Of a stretch of DNA of 64,000 bases, positions 37,301 to 43,300 are shown piece after piece. This DNA comes from Haliotis rubra (lineage: Eukaryota). The notes beneath the pieces are model-generated. The model worked only from the letters and a program-made list of their open reading frames with translations. It did no database searches and was not told the DNA's origin. The DNA is taken from positions 868,001 through 932,000 of the forward strand of contig NW_025765292.1 of the NCBI RefSeq assembly GCF_003918875.1, written 5' to 3'. Position numbers and translations under genes: made by a program. How positions within the stretch are numbered: position 1 is the first letter of the stretch; each line of letters starts with the position of its first letter.

Positions 37301-40300
37301 AGGTGATGAAACAGAGCAGATGAGAGCCTGATGATGTACTGATGGGATAGTCATGTTAAGCTGTCTATGTCAGAGGGCTAGCACTCTAAACATTAGTAGA
37401 CTGGACTAGGATATCTGTTCAATATTGCTATTCTGTTTTTCTGTAGGACGCTGATAGCTAAAGATGAGAGAGTGAACCTGGTGTCCTTCACTGGCAGCAC
37501 ACCAGTAAGTAAAGGGGACAGATGGTTTACTTCAACATGGAAAAGTCAGTTATTGTGTATTTAGCAATGAAATACTGTAATTAAGAAACCTAATATAGAA
37601 TTAATATCTTAAATATGTATTGTTTCAGTGGAGCACTGACACTTTTTGCTGGAACTACCTAACATCTGATGCTATGTTCAGAGCAAAATCATGATGCTCA
37701 GTATGAAAATTGACATATTCACTGATTGCTATGTTGTTTAAGTTAAGTGAGAAGTGGTAATTTCTGTAACTTTGAGGTGTTCAGCAAGGCACTGTTCTGT
37801 TGCAGATTGGGCAGAAGGTGTCTCTGATGGTTCAGGAAAGATTTGGTAATGTCCATTTGTTTTCTCTGACCTGTTTAGGGTTAACACTTTCGTATAGGGT
37901 TAACACTTTTTATATAGTCTAGCTACCTCTGTGGAGCATTATCGGTCAAGTTGTCTCACGGCACTGCAATTCACTGGCAGAGTTGCCTCCCTTAGATGTT
38001 CCAGGATTCAGTGATTGTAGTTTCTGAGATTTACATTGATTATATCCAACTGATCAGACCATACTGATCCCAAGATCTGCATTGATTTAGGTTTTCCTCC
38101 AATAAAATGCTAATGTGCTGTGATATTGCTGGAATACTGAGTTTAAAAAAATAATGTCAGTCAGGGTAAAGTAGCAAATGATGACATATACAGGTACATT
38201 TAAAAATAAATGAATGTCTGTTTATTGTGAAAAACATTGAAAGTTGTATCAGTAGCTTTTTGTATGTTTCAGGCAAATTTTTGTTGGAGCTTGGTGGAAA
38301 CAATGCAATAATAGGTATGTTATGATAAATGGAATACAAGAGTCATGTCTTTCATGGGCTCAAATATTCAGTACCATAAACTGAAGGAACTGTGCAGTGA
38401 TTAGGTTGTCAGAATCGGTCATCAGTACCTTGTTATGAGAGCCTGATTACCTTGTTATGAGAGACTGATTACCTTGTTATGAGAGACTGATTACCTTGTT
38501 ATGAGAGACCTGATTACCTTGTTATGAGAGACTGATTACCTTGTTATGAGGGACTGATTACCTTGTTATGAGAGACTGATTACCTTGTTATGAGGGACTG
38601 ATTACCTTGTTATGAGAGACTGATTACCTTGTTATGAGAGACTGATTACCTTGTTATGAGAGATTACCTTGTTATGACTGATTACCTTGTTATGAGAGAC
38701 TGATTACCTTGTTATGAGACTGATTACCTTGATTACCTTGTTATTATGAGAGACTGATTACCTTGTTATGAGGGACTGATTACCTTGTTATGAGAGACTG
38801 ACCTGATTACCTTGTTATGAGAGACTGATTACCTTGTTATGAGGGACTGATTACCTTGTTATTATGATTACCTTGTTATGAGAGACTGATTACCTTGTTA
38901 TGAGAGACTGATTACCTGATTACCTTGTTATGAGAGACTGATTACCTTGTTATGAGAGACTGATTACCTTGTTATGAGAGACTGATTACCTTGTTACCTT
39001 GTTATGAGGGACTGATTACCTTGTTATGAGAGACTGATTACCTTGTTATGAGAGACTGATTACCTTGTTATGAGAGACTGATTACCTTGTTATGAGAGAC
39101 TGATTACCTTGTTATGAGAGACTGATTACCTTGTTATGAGAGACTGATTACCTTGTTATGAGAGACTGATTACCTTGTTATGAGAGACTGATTACCTTGT
39201 TATGAGAGACTGATTACCTTGTTATGAGAGACTGTTACCTGATTACCTTGTTATGAGTGTTGACTGATTACCTTGTTATGAGAGTTAATAGACTGATTAC
39301 CTGTTAGTTATGAGTAATTCTTCTGTGTTCTGATTACCTTGAGATGTTATGAGGGACTGATTACCTTGGTGACTACTCTGGTTGGCCGTTGGTTCAAATT
39401 CTAGATTCACACAGATTGAAGCATGGTTATGTGTCCGACCTTTCATACCTTGATGGTACACCATTAAATCACATTAATCATAGGTTTTGTTGGTGTTTGT
39501 ACAAAACTGAGTTGAGGACATAAGTCATCGTGTCTGTAGGTCAAGAAAAGGGTAGACGATGATCTGTTGATATGCAGTGAAGGACATGACCTAGGCACTT
39601 GCATATGTGTGTGTTGTTTCAGATGGAGTGTTGTATGGGCCTCTACACAGTAAGCAGGGAGTGGCCCAGTACCAGCAGGCAGTGGCTGATGCAGTGGCAC
39701 AGGGAGGCAAGATAGAGTGTGGAGGCAAGGTAGGTCTTACATTAGGGTGTGGAGGCAAGGGATGTCTTACATGAGGGTGTTGAGGCAAGGTAGGTCTTAC
39801 ATGAGAGTGTGGAGGCAAGGTAGGTCTTACATGAGAGTGTGGAGGCAAGGTAGGTCTTACATGAGGGTGTGGAGGCAAGGTAGGTCTTACATGAGAGTGT
39901 AGAGGCAAGGTAGGTCTTACATGAGAGTATGGAGGCAAGGTAGGTCTTACATGAGGGTGTGGAGACAAGGTAGGTCTTACATGAGAGTGTGGAGGCAAGG
40001 TAGGTCTTACGTGAGGGTGTGGAGGCAAGGTAGGTCTTACATGAGAGTGTGGAGGCAAGGTAGGTCTTACATGAGGGTGTGGAGGACAGGTAGGTCTTAC
40101 GTGAGGGTGTGGAGGCAAGGTAGGTCTTACATGAGGGTGTGAAACACAGGTGGGCAAGATAGGGTGTGGAGGCAAGGTAGGTCTTACATGAGGGTGTGGA
40201 GGCAAGGTAGGTCTTACATGAGGGTGTTTTGAGGCAAGGTAGGTCTTACATTAGGGTGTGGAGGCAAGGTAGGTCTTACATGAGAGTGTGGAGGCAAGGT

Positions 40301-43300
40301 AGGTCTTACATGAGGATGTGAAACACAGTAGGGCAAGATAGGGTATGGAGGCAAGGTAGGTCTTACATGAGGGTGTGGAGGCAAGGTAGGTCTTACATGA
40401 GGGTGTTTTGAGGCAAGGTAGGTCTTACATTAGGGTGTGTGGAGGCAAGGTAGGTCTTACATGAGAGTGTGGAGGCAAGGTAGGTCTTACATGAGGATGT
40501 GAAACACAGTATGGCAAGATAGGGTATGGAGGCAAGGTAGGTCTTACATGAGGGTGTAGAGGCAAGGTAGGTCTTACATGAGGGTGTGGAGGCAAGGTAG
40601 GTCTTACATTAGGGTGTGGAGGCAAGGTAGGTCTTACATGAGGGTGTGAAGGCAAGGTAGGTCTTACATGAGGGTGTGGAGGCAAGGTAGGTCTTACATG
40701 AGAGTGTGGAGGCAAGGTAGGTCTTACATGAGGGTGTGGAGACAAGGTAGGTCTTACATGAGAGTGTGGAGGCAAGGTAGGTCTTACATGAGGGTGTTGA
40801 GGCAAGGTAGGTCTTACATGAGGGTGTGGAGGCAAGGTAGGTCTTACATGAGGGTGTTGAGACAAGGTAGGTCTTACATGAGAGTGTGGAGGCAAGGTAG
40901 GTCTTACATGAGGGTGTTGACACAAGGTGGGTCTTACATGAGGGTGTGGAGGCAAGGTAGGTCTTACATGAGGGTGTTGAGACAAGGTAGGTCTTACATT
41001 AGGGTGTTGAGACAAGGTAGGTCTTACATGAGGGTGTGGAGGCAAGGTAGGTCTTACATGAGGGTGTGGAGGCAAGGTAGGTCTTACGTGAGGGTTTGGA
41101 GGCAAGGTAGGTCTTACTTGAGGTGTGGAGGCAAGGTAGGTCTTACATTAGGGTGTGGAGGCAAGGTGGGTCTTACATGTTGAGAGGTTTGGAGCAGGTA
41201 GAGTCTTACTTGAGGTGTGGAGGCAAGGTAGGTCTTACATGAGGGTGTGGAGGCAAGGTAGGTCTTACGTGAGGGTGTGTGGAGGCAAGGTAGGTCTTAC
41301 GTGAGGGTGTGGAGGCAAGGTAGGTCTTACATGAGGGTGTGGAGGCAAGGTAGGTCTTACATGATTGAGAGGTGTGGAGGCAAGGTAGGTCTTACATGAG
41401 GTGTTGAGGCAAGGTAGGTCTTACATTGAGGGTGTGGAGGCAAGGTAGGTCTTACATGAGGGTGTGGAGGCAAGGTAGGTCTTACATGAGAGTGTGGAGC
41501 AAGGTAGGTCTTACATGAGGGTGTGGAGGCAAGGTAGGTCTTACATGAGGTGTGGAGGCAAGGTAGGTCTTACATGAGGGTGTGGAGGCAAGGTAGGTCT
41601 TACATGAGGGTGTGGAGGCAAGGTAGGTCTTACATGAGGGTGTGGAGGCAAGGTAGGTCTTACATGAGAGTGTGGAGGCAAGGTAGGTCTTACATGAGGG
41701 TGTGGAGGCAAGGTAGGTCTTACATGAGGGTGTGGAGGCAAGGTAGGTCTTACATGAGGGTGTGGAGGCAAGGTAGGTCTTACATTGAGGGTGTGGAGGC
41801 AAGGTAGGTCTTACGGTGAGGGTGTGGAGGCAAGGTAGGTCTTACATGAGGGTGTGGAGGCAAGGTAGGTCTTACATGAGGGTGTGGAGGCAAGGTAGGT
41901 CTTACATGAGAGTGTGGAGGCAAGGTAGGTCTTACATGAGGGTGTGGAGGCAAGGTAGGTCTTACATGAGGGTGTGGAGAGCAAGGTAGGTCTTACATGA
42001 GGGTGTTGAGGCAAGGTAGGTCTTACATGAGGGTGTGGAGGCAAGGTAGGTCTTACATGAGGGTGTGGAGGCAAGGTAGGTCTTACATGAGGGTGTGGAG
42101 GGCAAGGTAGGTCTTACATGAGGGTGTGGAGGCAAGGTAGGTCTTACATGAGGGTGTGGAGGCAAGGTAGGTCTTACATGAGGGTGTGGAGGCAGGGGGC
42201 AAGGTAGGTCTTACATGAGGGTGTGGAAGGCAAGGTAGGTCTTACATGAGAGTGTGGAGGCAAGGTAGGTCTTACATGAGGGTGTGGAGGCAAGGTAGGT
42301 CTTACATGAGGGGTGTGGAGGCAAGGTAGGTCTTACATGAGGGTGTGTGGAGAGCAAGGTAGGTCTTACATGAGGGTGTGGAGGCAAGGTAGGTCTTACA
42401 TGAGAGTGTGGAGGCAAGGTAGGTCTTACATGAGGGTATGGAGGCAAGGTAGGTCTTACATGAGGGTGTGGAGGCAAGGTAGGTCTTACATGAAGATGTG
42501 AAACACAGTAGGGCAAGATAGGGTATGGAGGCAAGGTAGGTCTTACATGAGGGTGTGGAGGCAAGGTAGGTCTTACATTAGTTTTAGCCACCACCAAACA
42601 TGGAAGTGGACCTCCTTTATCTCAGCAGTATATAAAAACGTAAAGACAGACAATGCAGTGTAGACAACATGTTGACAGAAGATGGGTAGAAAATTTGAAT
42701 TATTAATATAATGCCCTGTGCTCAAGTCTGTGTACTATATTTATGTTAAAGTGAATGTATAATTGCTTATACCACTCTGTTCCTTGGCAGGTGATCGATC
42801 GTCCTGGCAACTTTGTGGAACCAACTATCATCAGTGGACTTTCCCATGATGCAGCAGTCGTTCAACGTGAAACATTTGCCCCCATTGTGTATGCTCTCAA
42901 GTGTAAGGTACGTATGATATCAATAAAACGATGGGATTGTCTGACCCAGAGTGTTGCCTGAAGGGTTAGCCTGGTGGTTGTACTGTGTCTCTGTAGTGGT
43001 ATAGAAGCGAGGATCAGTGGATAAGCTATACCTGTTATTTAATTACTGCTGTCCTGTGTGTTAGTTCCCTTGATTGTGACTTTTCAGAGTTTTGAGGAAG
43101 CTGTTGAATGGAACAATGAAGTGAAACAGGGACTCACCAGCAGCTTGTTCACGAGGAACCCCAACAAGATCTTCAGGTGGATTGGGTATGTTGGTTTTAA
43201 CAACATCTCCATATGGGTTGGTCGCCTCATCACAAAGAAGTGATATGTCATAGGTATCTAGTCAACAATCATTGGTTGAACTGAGAAGGTTGTGTAAAAC

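Follow-up and report, generated by a model that had tools for sequence, protein, structure and literature searches.

In the abalone Haliotis rubra, about 93% of one intron of the ALDH7A1 gene consists of tandem copies of the gene's own exon end and splice donor. We consider it probable (about 0.75) that this array is a tolerated 'mirage' minisatellite that was born by slippage, evolves in concert, and leaves the pre-mRNA with the rest of the intron by use of the first donor. Slipped or unequal exchange would have duplicated a 30-bp segment spanning the exon end and the donor in a common ancestor of the two species H. rubra and H. asinina. In each lineage separately, the copies would then have been expanded and homogenised by unequal crossing-over and conversion, to about 95 near-identical units in H. 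rubra and, in H. asinina, about 43 units that have decayed; the array would have no dedicated function. In this reading, the first donor that the spliceosome meets would be the one paired with the exon defined by the acceptor, through exon definition or 5'-to-3' 'oriented scanning'; because the first donor wins, the whole array would be spliced away with the intron. A decoy used now and then would produce a transcript that carries a premature stop; a stable aberrant protein would thus be unlikely, and the expansion would be tolerated.

The junction-derived array and its host gene

All coordinates refer to the plus strand of the window, the whole 64-kb stretch of H. rubra DNA that was analysed. 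The array occupies 39717..42579, as delimited by Tandem Repeats Finder (TRF), a parse of its units, contigs of the array, and the orthologous array of H. asinina. TRF reports a period of 30, 94.9 copies, and 90% matches over 39717-42578. The copies run head to tail within the intron, with a unit size inside the range of 10-100 bp, and each unit corresponds to the last 13 exonic and the first 17 intronic nucleotides of junction 39729|39730. Thus, the first monomer holds the authentic exon-intron boundary, and the splice site is reiterated in the copies that follow. The original prediction, that an exon end plus its donor had been amplified about 90-fold, stands on both counts: TRF returned the same consensus unit, and a parse anchored on TCTTAC gave 91 units, 66 of them exactly 30 nt long.

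Four of the parsed units are long variants of 57 nt, with about 27 extra, exon-like bases; aligned to the exon tail, they copy approximately 40 nt of the exon end. Three of them, at 40120, 40299, and 40480, mark a higher-order block of about 180 bp (40120..40536), and the fourth lies outside it, at 42479. Exact GGCAAG|GTAGGT sites number 78 when the authentic one is counted, with 47 of the 78 in phase 0; 31 of the 77 exact decoys fall out of phase as well. In 87 of the 91 units the donor hexamer reads GTAGGT and in two GTGGGT, and the remaining two lack GT (GGATGT at 39760 and TAGAGT at 41199). Beyond the array, the intron has a unique 3' tail of 211 nt (42580..42790) with a polypyrimidine tract and a CAG acceptor, which aligns with the tail of the H. 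asinina intron.

Several other identities for the repeat were rejected. A dispersed satellite that abuts the exon by chance is ruled out, because on both strands of the 64-kb window the unit occurs in the array alone. No acceptor-like sites (AG after a pyrimidine tract) occur within the array, which makes internal mini-exons or recursive splicing unlikely. A structured RNA was rejected for want of inverted repeats in 39000-43500 and of Rfam families in 31000-47000, and a coding repeat because the open frame through the array had no protein homologue in the search.

The host gene was identified by structure and by homology. Its best PDB matches are antiquitin/ALDH7A1, and its exons share 84-100% identity with Haliotis ALDH7A1 (P0202) and about 63% with sea-urchin ALDH7A1, which makes it an ALDH7A1 orthologue. 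The exon upstream of the array (39623..39729) ends in phase 0, and the next exon lies at 42791..42907; tblastn with sea-urchin and Haliotis ALDH7A1 places both, and when joined they align without gaps across GGK|VID to the ALDH7A1 structures 2jg7 and 4x0t. Two catalytic-cysteine exons are missing from the window just upstream; as both are present in read contigs, their absence reflects either an assembly collapse or a deletion allele.

The authentic 5' splice site (AAG|GTAGGT, 39727..39735) is the point at which a 1,542-nt mRNA contig, X12, departs from the genomic sequence: the contig lies on 39622-39731 and joins 39729 straight to the exon at 42791. The predicted position of the junction, 39729/39730, is therefore confirmed by both the protein alignment and the mRNA. 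The contig mapping covered 39300-39990, with the join to the acceptor read from the loose end of the contig. X12 is the single mRNA contig over the exon, and it contains no joint from a decoy, with the proviso that contigs drop rare isoforms. Regular splicing from the most upstream donor is likewise seen in H. asinina, whose RefSeq protein reads ECGGK|VID across the junction, and a preference for the first donor would account for this pattern.

Distribution of the array among abalones

The origin of the array is shared with H. asinina, which carries a 30-bp array of 42.8 copies with a consensus identical to that of H. rubra at 29 of 30 positions. Location at the same ALDH7A1 junction and the same 3' boundary (..TAGTTTTAGCCACCA) argue for a single origin. 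The array is absent from this junction in H. rufescens and H. cracherodii, where the introns are single-copy (855 and 643 nt, respectively) and the same ALDH7A1 gene is intact despite the lack of an array there. A search with the exon read-through ORF found only three more distant relatives, none of which has the array. The exon end at this junction is conserved in relatives without the array, including H. rufescens, H. cracherodii, and the relative L001; this conservation and the additional exon sequence copied by the 57-nt units both point to exonic ancestry of the repeat. The array was thus built from the gene's own junction, with the exon sequence ancestral and the outgroups single-copy.

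Comparison of the two species also reveals length instability and concerted evolution, with about 95 copies in one and about 43 in the other and the higher-order block of about 180 bp. The majority donor variant differs as well: GTAGGT in H. rubra (87/91) versus mainly GTGGGT in H. asinina. The GT dinucleotide is kept in only 23 of 41 H. asinina units and lost in 18 (44%), which suggests that the donors are under no constraint in that species. On the one hand, the array locus has persisted since the split of H. rubra and H. asinina, whose flanking intron sequences agree at only about 70% of positions when gaps are counted, and this speaks against a neutral reading. On the other hand, persistence does not imply function, because a 58-bp array in intron 15 that was not built from a junction is also common to all four Haliotis ALDH7A1 loci.

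Arrays built from exon-intron junctions recur at other donors of the same gene. H. cracherodii has one at the exon-14 donor of ALDH7A1 (52 bp, 15 copies), and L001 has one at the catalytic-exon donor (118 bp, 23 copies). This recurrence is consistent with a tolerated expansion, and it suggests that junction-derived minisatellites may be a regular feature of abalone genomes.

The first units and alternative readings

The beginning of the array bears on the question of selection. Unit 1 (39730..39759) is stop-free in frame, with TTA in place of TGA, and the first decoy donor at its end (39757..39765) is inactivated (AAG|GGATGT). The first in-frame stop of the read-through, the TGA at 39772..39774, lies upstream of all intact decoys and is followed by a second TGA at 39781. 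Consequently, the first intact decoy (AAG|GTAGGT, phase 0, 39787..39795), 60 nt downstream of the authentic donor, sits behind two stops. The original prediction had described a stop-free first repeat with a mutated donor and an in-frame TGA ahead of every intact decoy, and we found both; however, TTA is not special to unit 1, as it occurs in six full units and in the last, partial one. The prediction also called for the two variants to be checked in reads. A DNA contig of run X1, which may represent the assembly's own sample, shows zero differences from the window over 39731-39793, which excludes a consensus error as the source of GGATGT and TTA in that run; units 1 and 2 are not spanned by any contig of X3 or X8, which is no indication of their state in those organisms.

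An alternative reading accepts that the array is neutral, yet holds that purifying selection shaped its first units, so that only lineages survive in which the nearest decoys either are dead or follow a stop and a full-length protein with ten extra residues is never made. We regard it as a minority possibility. The sole stop-free unit of H. rubra ends in the sole donor with two core changes, both unique within the array, and only 2 of 90 H. rubra decoys (about 2%) lack GT. In H. asinina, unit 1 has a TGA at codon 5 and its first decoy is intact, which would amount to a second, different safeguard. Judging from these sequences, selection may have removed the one in-frame decoy donor. The observation is post hoc, however, and the TGA is simply the array consensus; an in-frame stop in the unit is not rare (about a 16% chance), since exon or donor constraint leaves only about 11 of the 30 bases free. 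Moreover, homogenisation commonly bypasses the boundary units of arrays, which then decay (PMC3087553). Judged against the array interior, a dead donor has a chance of about 2%, but this rises to as much as 40% or so if boundary units escape homogenisation, and with 44% of H. asinina units lacking GT a dead boundary donor may be unsurprising. Finally, human F7 tolerates stop-free pseudo-sites and leaves them unused.

Two regulatory readings fare worse. According to the first, which we consider improbable, decoy splicing leads to a premature stop and degradation, and array length tunes ALDH7A1 output. It draws on the 77 exact strong donors, all of them behind in-frame stops and with exon junctions downstream. 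In addition, the two proximal pseudo-sites are used in human CBS and IFI 6-16 (PMC1557585), so the silence of decoys cannot be assumed. Nevertheless, the only mRNA contig is canonical, and the human F7 array is silent even where its pseudo-sites are stop-free. Nor are the alternative sites conserved among relatives in the manner of NMD-coupled unproductive splicing: the array is missing in H. rufescens and H. cracherodii, H. asinina has let its donors decay (18 of 41 units without GT), and similar junction arrays have arisen at other donors of ALDH7A1. ALDH7A1 is a housekeeping enzyme of lysine catabolism, and we know of no need for its output to be tuned by array length.

The second regulatory reading, a U1 snRNP sink or local platform on which many U1 particles per transcript would alter pre-mRNA splicing, cleavage, or retention, is very improbable. 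The units, 89 of which bear GT, offer eight contiguous potential pairs with the U1 5' end, but the array has no poly(A) signal to suppress, and its donors were left to decay in H. asinina. Titration by one intron is not possible, given that few cellular RNAs are as abundant as U1. The canonical mRNA join, the absence in congeners, the decay of donors, and the recurrence of such arrays leave both the copy-number rheostat and the U1 sink of the original prediction without support and favour its fallback, a tolerated neutral expansion.

Least credible is mis-assembly of the array or its length. In its favour, the intron immediately upstream lacks two exons, through mis-assembly or a deletion, and the exact copy number of the 2.9-kb array hinges on long reads. 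Against it, unitigs of the array occur in runs with three different organism labels, X1 covers the 5' junction and the first units, X3 shows the 3' boundary, and the independent H. asinina assembly holds an orthologous array.

Implications and comparison with known systems

Taken alone, the ALDH7A1 array is another case of a described phenomenon and not a demonstrated regulator of expression. Its value is that of a clean, extreme natural experiment, in which 77 exact copies come after a single authentic donor and the mRNA is nonetheless normally spliced. With about 90 strong, identical donors, the locus would let one examine in nature how a spliceosome settles on the first of many equivalent 5' splice sites. 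The species compared, which range from those with no array to H. asinina with 43 decayed units and H. rubra with 95 homogenised ones, show how junction arrays are born, homogenised, and decay, and junction-derived minisatellites are to be expected by gene annotators and splice predictors. A broader proposal, which we put forward as speculative and would not bet on, is that splice-donor junctions are preferred birthplaces of minisatellites in abalone genomes (mollusc 'mirages'), with a selective filter that would keep arrays whose nearest decoys are dead or stop-masked.

Arrays of this kind are already described in human F7 intron 7, CBS, and IFI 6-16 and as amphioxus 'mirages'. In the 37-bp VNTR of F7 intron 7, minigenes proved that only the most upstream donor is used, which demonstrates 5'-to-3' 'oriented scanning', or first-donor choice, experimentally; the silence of the array is independent of an in-frame stop, since stop-free pseudo-sites are also unused (Borensztajn et al. 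2006, PMC1557585). As in ALDH7A1, the first monomer of F7 spans the exon-intron boundary, and identical pseudo-donors follow the authentic one. However, F7 has 5-9 copies versus about 95 in the abalone, a monomer of 4 exonic and 33 intronic nucleotides versus 13 and 17, and a weak donor (TGG|GTGGGT) versus a strong one (AAG|GTAGGT), and the proof comes from minigenes for this vertebrate gene versus a single mRNA contig for the abalone.

The junction minisatellites of human CBS intron 13 and IFI 6-16 intron 2, as summarised in the same paper, contain 15-25 reiterated donors, and the two proximal pseudo-sites are used constitutively (PMC1557585). They resemble the abalone array in having tens of reiterated donors after the real one and differ from it in that their proximal pseudo-sites are used, whereas the most proximal abalone decoy is dead. 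The amphioxus 'mirage' minisatellites (Adh3, globins) are tandem duplications of exon-intron boundaries found in many genes of one genome; they are unstable in length and evolve in concert, their boundary units are excluded from homogenisation, and regular splicing is undisturbed (PMC3087553). The abalone array shares with them the tandem boundary, the unstable length, the concerted evolution, and the regular splicing. It belongs to a mollusc rather than a cephalochordate and has a far higher copy number than the 3-6 units of amphioxus globins, and in amphioxus, unlike in the abalone array, both 5' and 3' boundaries are duplicated.

The original prediction cited the idea of suppression of splicing, in which latent 5' splice sites typically have in-frame stops ahead of them. 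The abalone array is similar in that an in-frame stop precedes each of its usable intronic donors. Unlike in the latent-site idea, however, the abalone stop belongs to the repeat unit itself, and a single event accounts for all the stop-masked copies; the silence of F7 was found not to depend on stops. The result advises caution: an in-frame stop behind a decoy site need not mean regulation.

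The splice junction and its array

The ALDH7A1 exon-intron junction at 39729 is real: when exons 39623-39729 and 42791-42907 are joined, seabream antiquitin (2jg7) and human ALDH7A1 (4x0t) both align to the product without gaps across GGK|VID. Using tblastn with sea-urchin (P0054) and Haliotis (P0202) ALDH7A1 proteins as queries, we mapped 17 exons of the gene on the plus strand, from ~31345 to 45830; these exons share 84-100% identity with the Haliotis protein. Tandem Repeats Finder detected a single array at 39717-42578 (period 30, 94.9 copies, 90% matches; consensus unit GTGTGGAGGCAAG + GTAGGTCTTACATGAGG), which occupies 2,850 of the 3,061 bases of the intron. 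When parsed with a TCTTAC anchor, it yielded 91 units, 66 of them exactly 30 nt long, four of 57 nt, and the remainder off by 1-7 nt. The 30-bp unit was not found elsewhere in the window. Inside the array there is a higher-order block of ~180 bp (40120-40536).

Counting the authentic one, 78 sites match GGCAAG|GTAGGT exactly; their phase relative to the authentic donor is 0 in 47 cases, 1 in 16, and 2 in 15. Of the 91 units, 87 have GTAGGT as the donor hexamer and two have GTGGGT, and only two have lost GT (GGATGT at 39760 and TAGAGT at 41199). On read-through from the exon, the first in-frame stop is the TGA at 39772, followed by another at 39781; thus, unit 1 (39730-39759), with TTA, is the sole stop-free unit, and it ends in a dead donor. 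The original prediction, which held that the exon end and donor were amplified about 90-fold, that the first repeat is stop-free with a mutated donor, and that the intact decoys (array copies of the authentic donor) lie behind an in-frame stop, described the sequence correctly on all these points.

The window is generally array-rich, with minisatellites outside ALDH7A1 at 13062-13575 (173-bp x3), 46308-46551 (19-bp x12), and 51649-52437 (41-bp x16, with higher-order structure). A dispersed repeat with similar ORF pieces, probably a SINE-like element, occurs in several introns (~33092, 34231, 35600, 36765, and 45400).

Sequencing-read contigs and the upstream exons

Read evidence came from Logan contigs compared over 39300-39990. 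A 1,542-nt contig from run X12, probably RNA, covers 39622-39731 and continues with GATCGATCGTCCTGGCAAC.., the start of exon 42791, which is the canonical join. No decoy joints were seen among the contigs over this interval, where minor isoforms could escape a single RNA contig. A DNA contig from run X1, possibly the assembly's own sample, spans 39731-39793 with zero differences and confirms, for that run, both TGAs as well as the TTA and GGATGT variants. The 3' array boundary in a contig from run X3 is the same as in the window (..CAT|TAGTTTTAG..), and run X8 (DNA, third organism label) contains array units and a different upstream intron. Over 39516-39631, X1 has two haplotypes, with 0 and 6 differences from the window. 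Over 39369-39545, its sole contig differs at 39503 and 39514; either the window consensus is in error there or X1 comes from an individual other than the one assembled.

At 38314-39368 the window lacks the two ALDH7A1 exons that encode residues ~307-364 (catalytic Cys, GQRCTT..RIGDPLD) and has a 22-bp satellite instead; no contig covers 39300-39368. The end of the missing exon and a GTGAGT donor lie directly upstream of 39369 in the X12 mRNA contig and in X1 and X3 DNA contigs, and both exons are present in the three other Haliotis loci. The gap thus suggests an assembly collapse or a deletion allele rather than a gene without an active site.

Junction arrays in related loci

A protein search yielded the Haliotis ALDH7A1 cluster, whose genomic loci in H. 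rufescens (L002), H. cracherodii (L003), and H. asinina (L004) served for comparison. The junction that lies at 39729 in the window also carries a 30-bp array in H. asinina (8576-9854; 42.8 copies; 83% matches), with the same 3' boundary and a consensus one base off that of the window (GTGGGT for GTAGGT). GT is kept in only 23 of its 41 units; AAG|GTGGGT is exact in 15, and AT stands at the donor start in 12. Its unit 1 has TGA at codon 5 and an intact decoy. The unique intron tail is only ~70% identical to that of the window, gaps included; thus, the array locus persisted through considerable divergence.

The H. rufescens and H. cracherodii loci lack an array at this junction, and their introns (855 and 643 nt, respectively) begin with GTCAGTCTTTGTTAGGAGTGGAAC... 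Within them, ..TTAGGAGTGGA.. resembles exonic ..TAGAGTGTGGA.. ~30 nt upstream, a likeness that could reflect either microhomology that seeded the slippage or what is left of a second unit. The TTA/TGA position has T in these single-copy introns, in the last partial unit of the window, and in the last H. asinina unit; therefore, TGA is probably a derived variant that spread within the array interior.

Other donors of the gene carry arrays as well. At the exon-14 donor, H. cracherodii has a 52-bp array (14.8 copies, 99% identical), each unit comprising the last 31 nt of the exon, GTAAGT, and 15 further bases, followed by a decayed 35-bp derivative of 23.5 copies (together within 11842-13401); H. 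rufescens retains a remnant (14005-14234), and the window has no array at this donor (43186). In L001, an ENA metagenome contig from a more distant relative (exon ~84% identical), there is no array at exon 12, and a 118-bp x23 array (6166-8877) begins within the catalytic-cysteine exon, 10 nt ahead of its donor, with CTG|GTGAGT at the authentic donor and CTG|GTGAAT in the copies. Thus, three different donors of ALDH7A1 spawned arrays in different lineages. A 58/59-bp minisatellite in intron 15, away from splice sites, is common to all four Haliotis loci in ~4 to 20 copies (window 43825-44578; H. rufescens 14635-15764; H. cracherodii 13790-14074; H. asinina 11054-11268), so array persistence alone is no sign of function.

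Origin of the array and known junction minisatellites

We consider a tolerated minisatellite the probable explanation (roughly 75%). Slippage across the exon-intron junction would have given birth to it, unequal exchange would then have expanded and homogenised it, and it would be spliced out whole, as an intron, from the first donor. Both the ~180-bp block and the majority variants particular to each species point to unequal exchange.

Selection on the first units is possible but doubtful. The sole decoy able to add a stop-free 10-residue insert has a destroyed GT, both changes being unique in the array, whereas in H. asinina it is a stop that guards against this risk. Judged against the H. 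rubra array interior, a donor would be dead by chance in ~2% of cases (2/90). However, homogenisation typically bypasses boundary units, and 44% of H. asinina units are GT-less. For a unit with this make-up, the probability of containing an in-frame stop is roughly 16%. Of the functions proposed in the original prediction, unproductive splicing tuned by array length is improbable and the binding of U1 snRNP as a sink even more so: neither has support of any sort, and both are hard to square with the absence of the array in congeners and donor decay in H. asinina.

The array belongs to a described class of minisatellites in which the exon-intron boundary falls inside the first monomer (PMC1557585); we found no mollusc reports of such arrays within the literature searched. 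The most upstream donor alone is used in human F7 IVS7 (37 bp, 5-9 copies), as is the authentic donor alone in LMNB2 (100 bp, 10-15 repeats) and intron 4 of the PDGF gene (81 bp, 16-18 repeats); IFI 6-16 (25 pseudo-sites) and CBS (15-20 repeats) use the authentic site and two pseudo-sites, which are proximal in IFI 6-16. The authors inferred 5'-to-3' oriented scanning (PMC1557585). The amphioxus "mirages," exon-intron boundaries tandemly duplicated in several genes, leave splicing undisturbed and show unstable length and concerted evolution, with boundary units kept out of homogenisation (PMC3087553). The H. rubra ALDH7A1 array, confirmed as an observation, is an extreme case of these already described minisatellites; it may belong to a pattern that spans the abalone genome, and its value lies mainly in being a natural experiment on how a 5' splice site is chosen.
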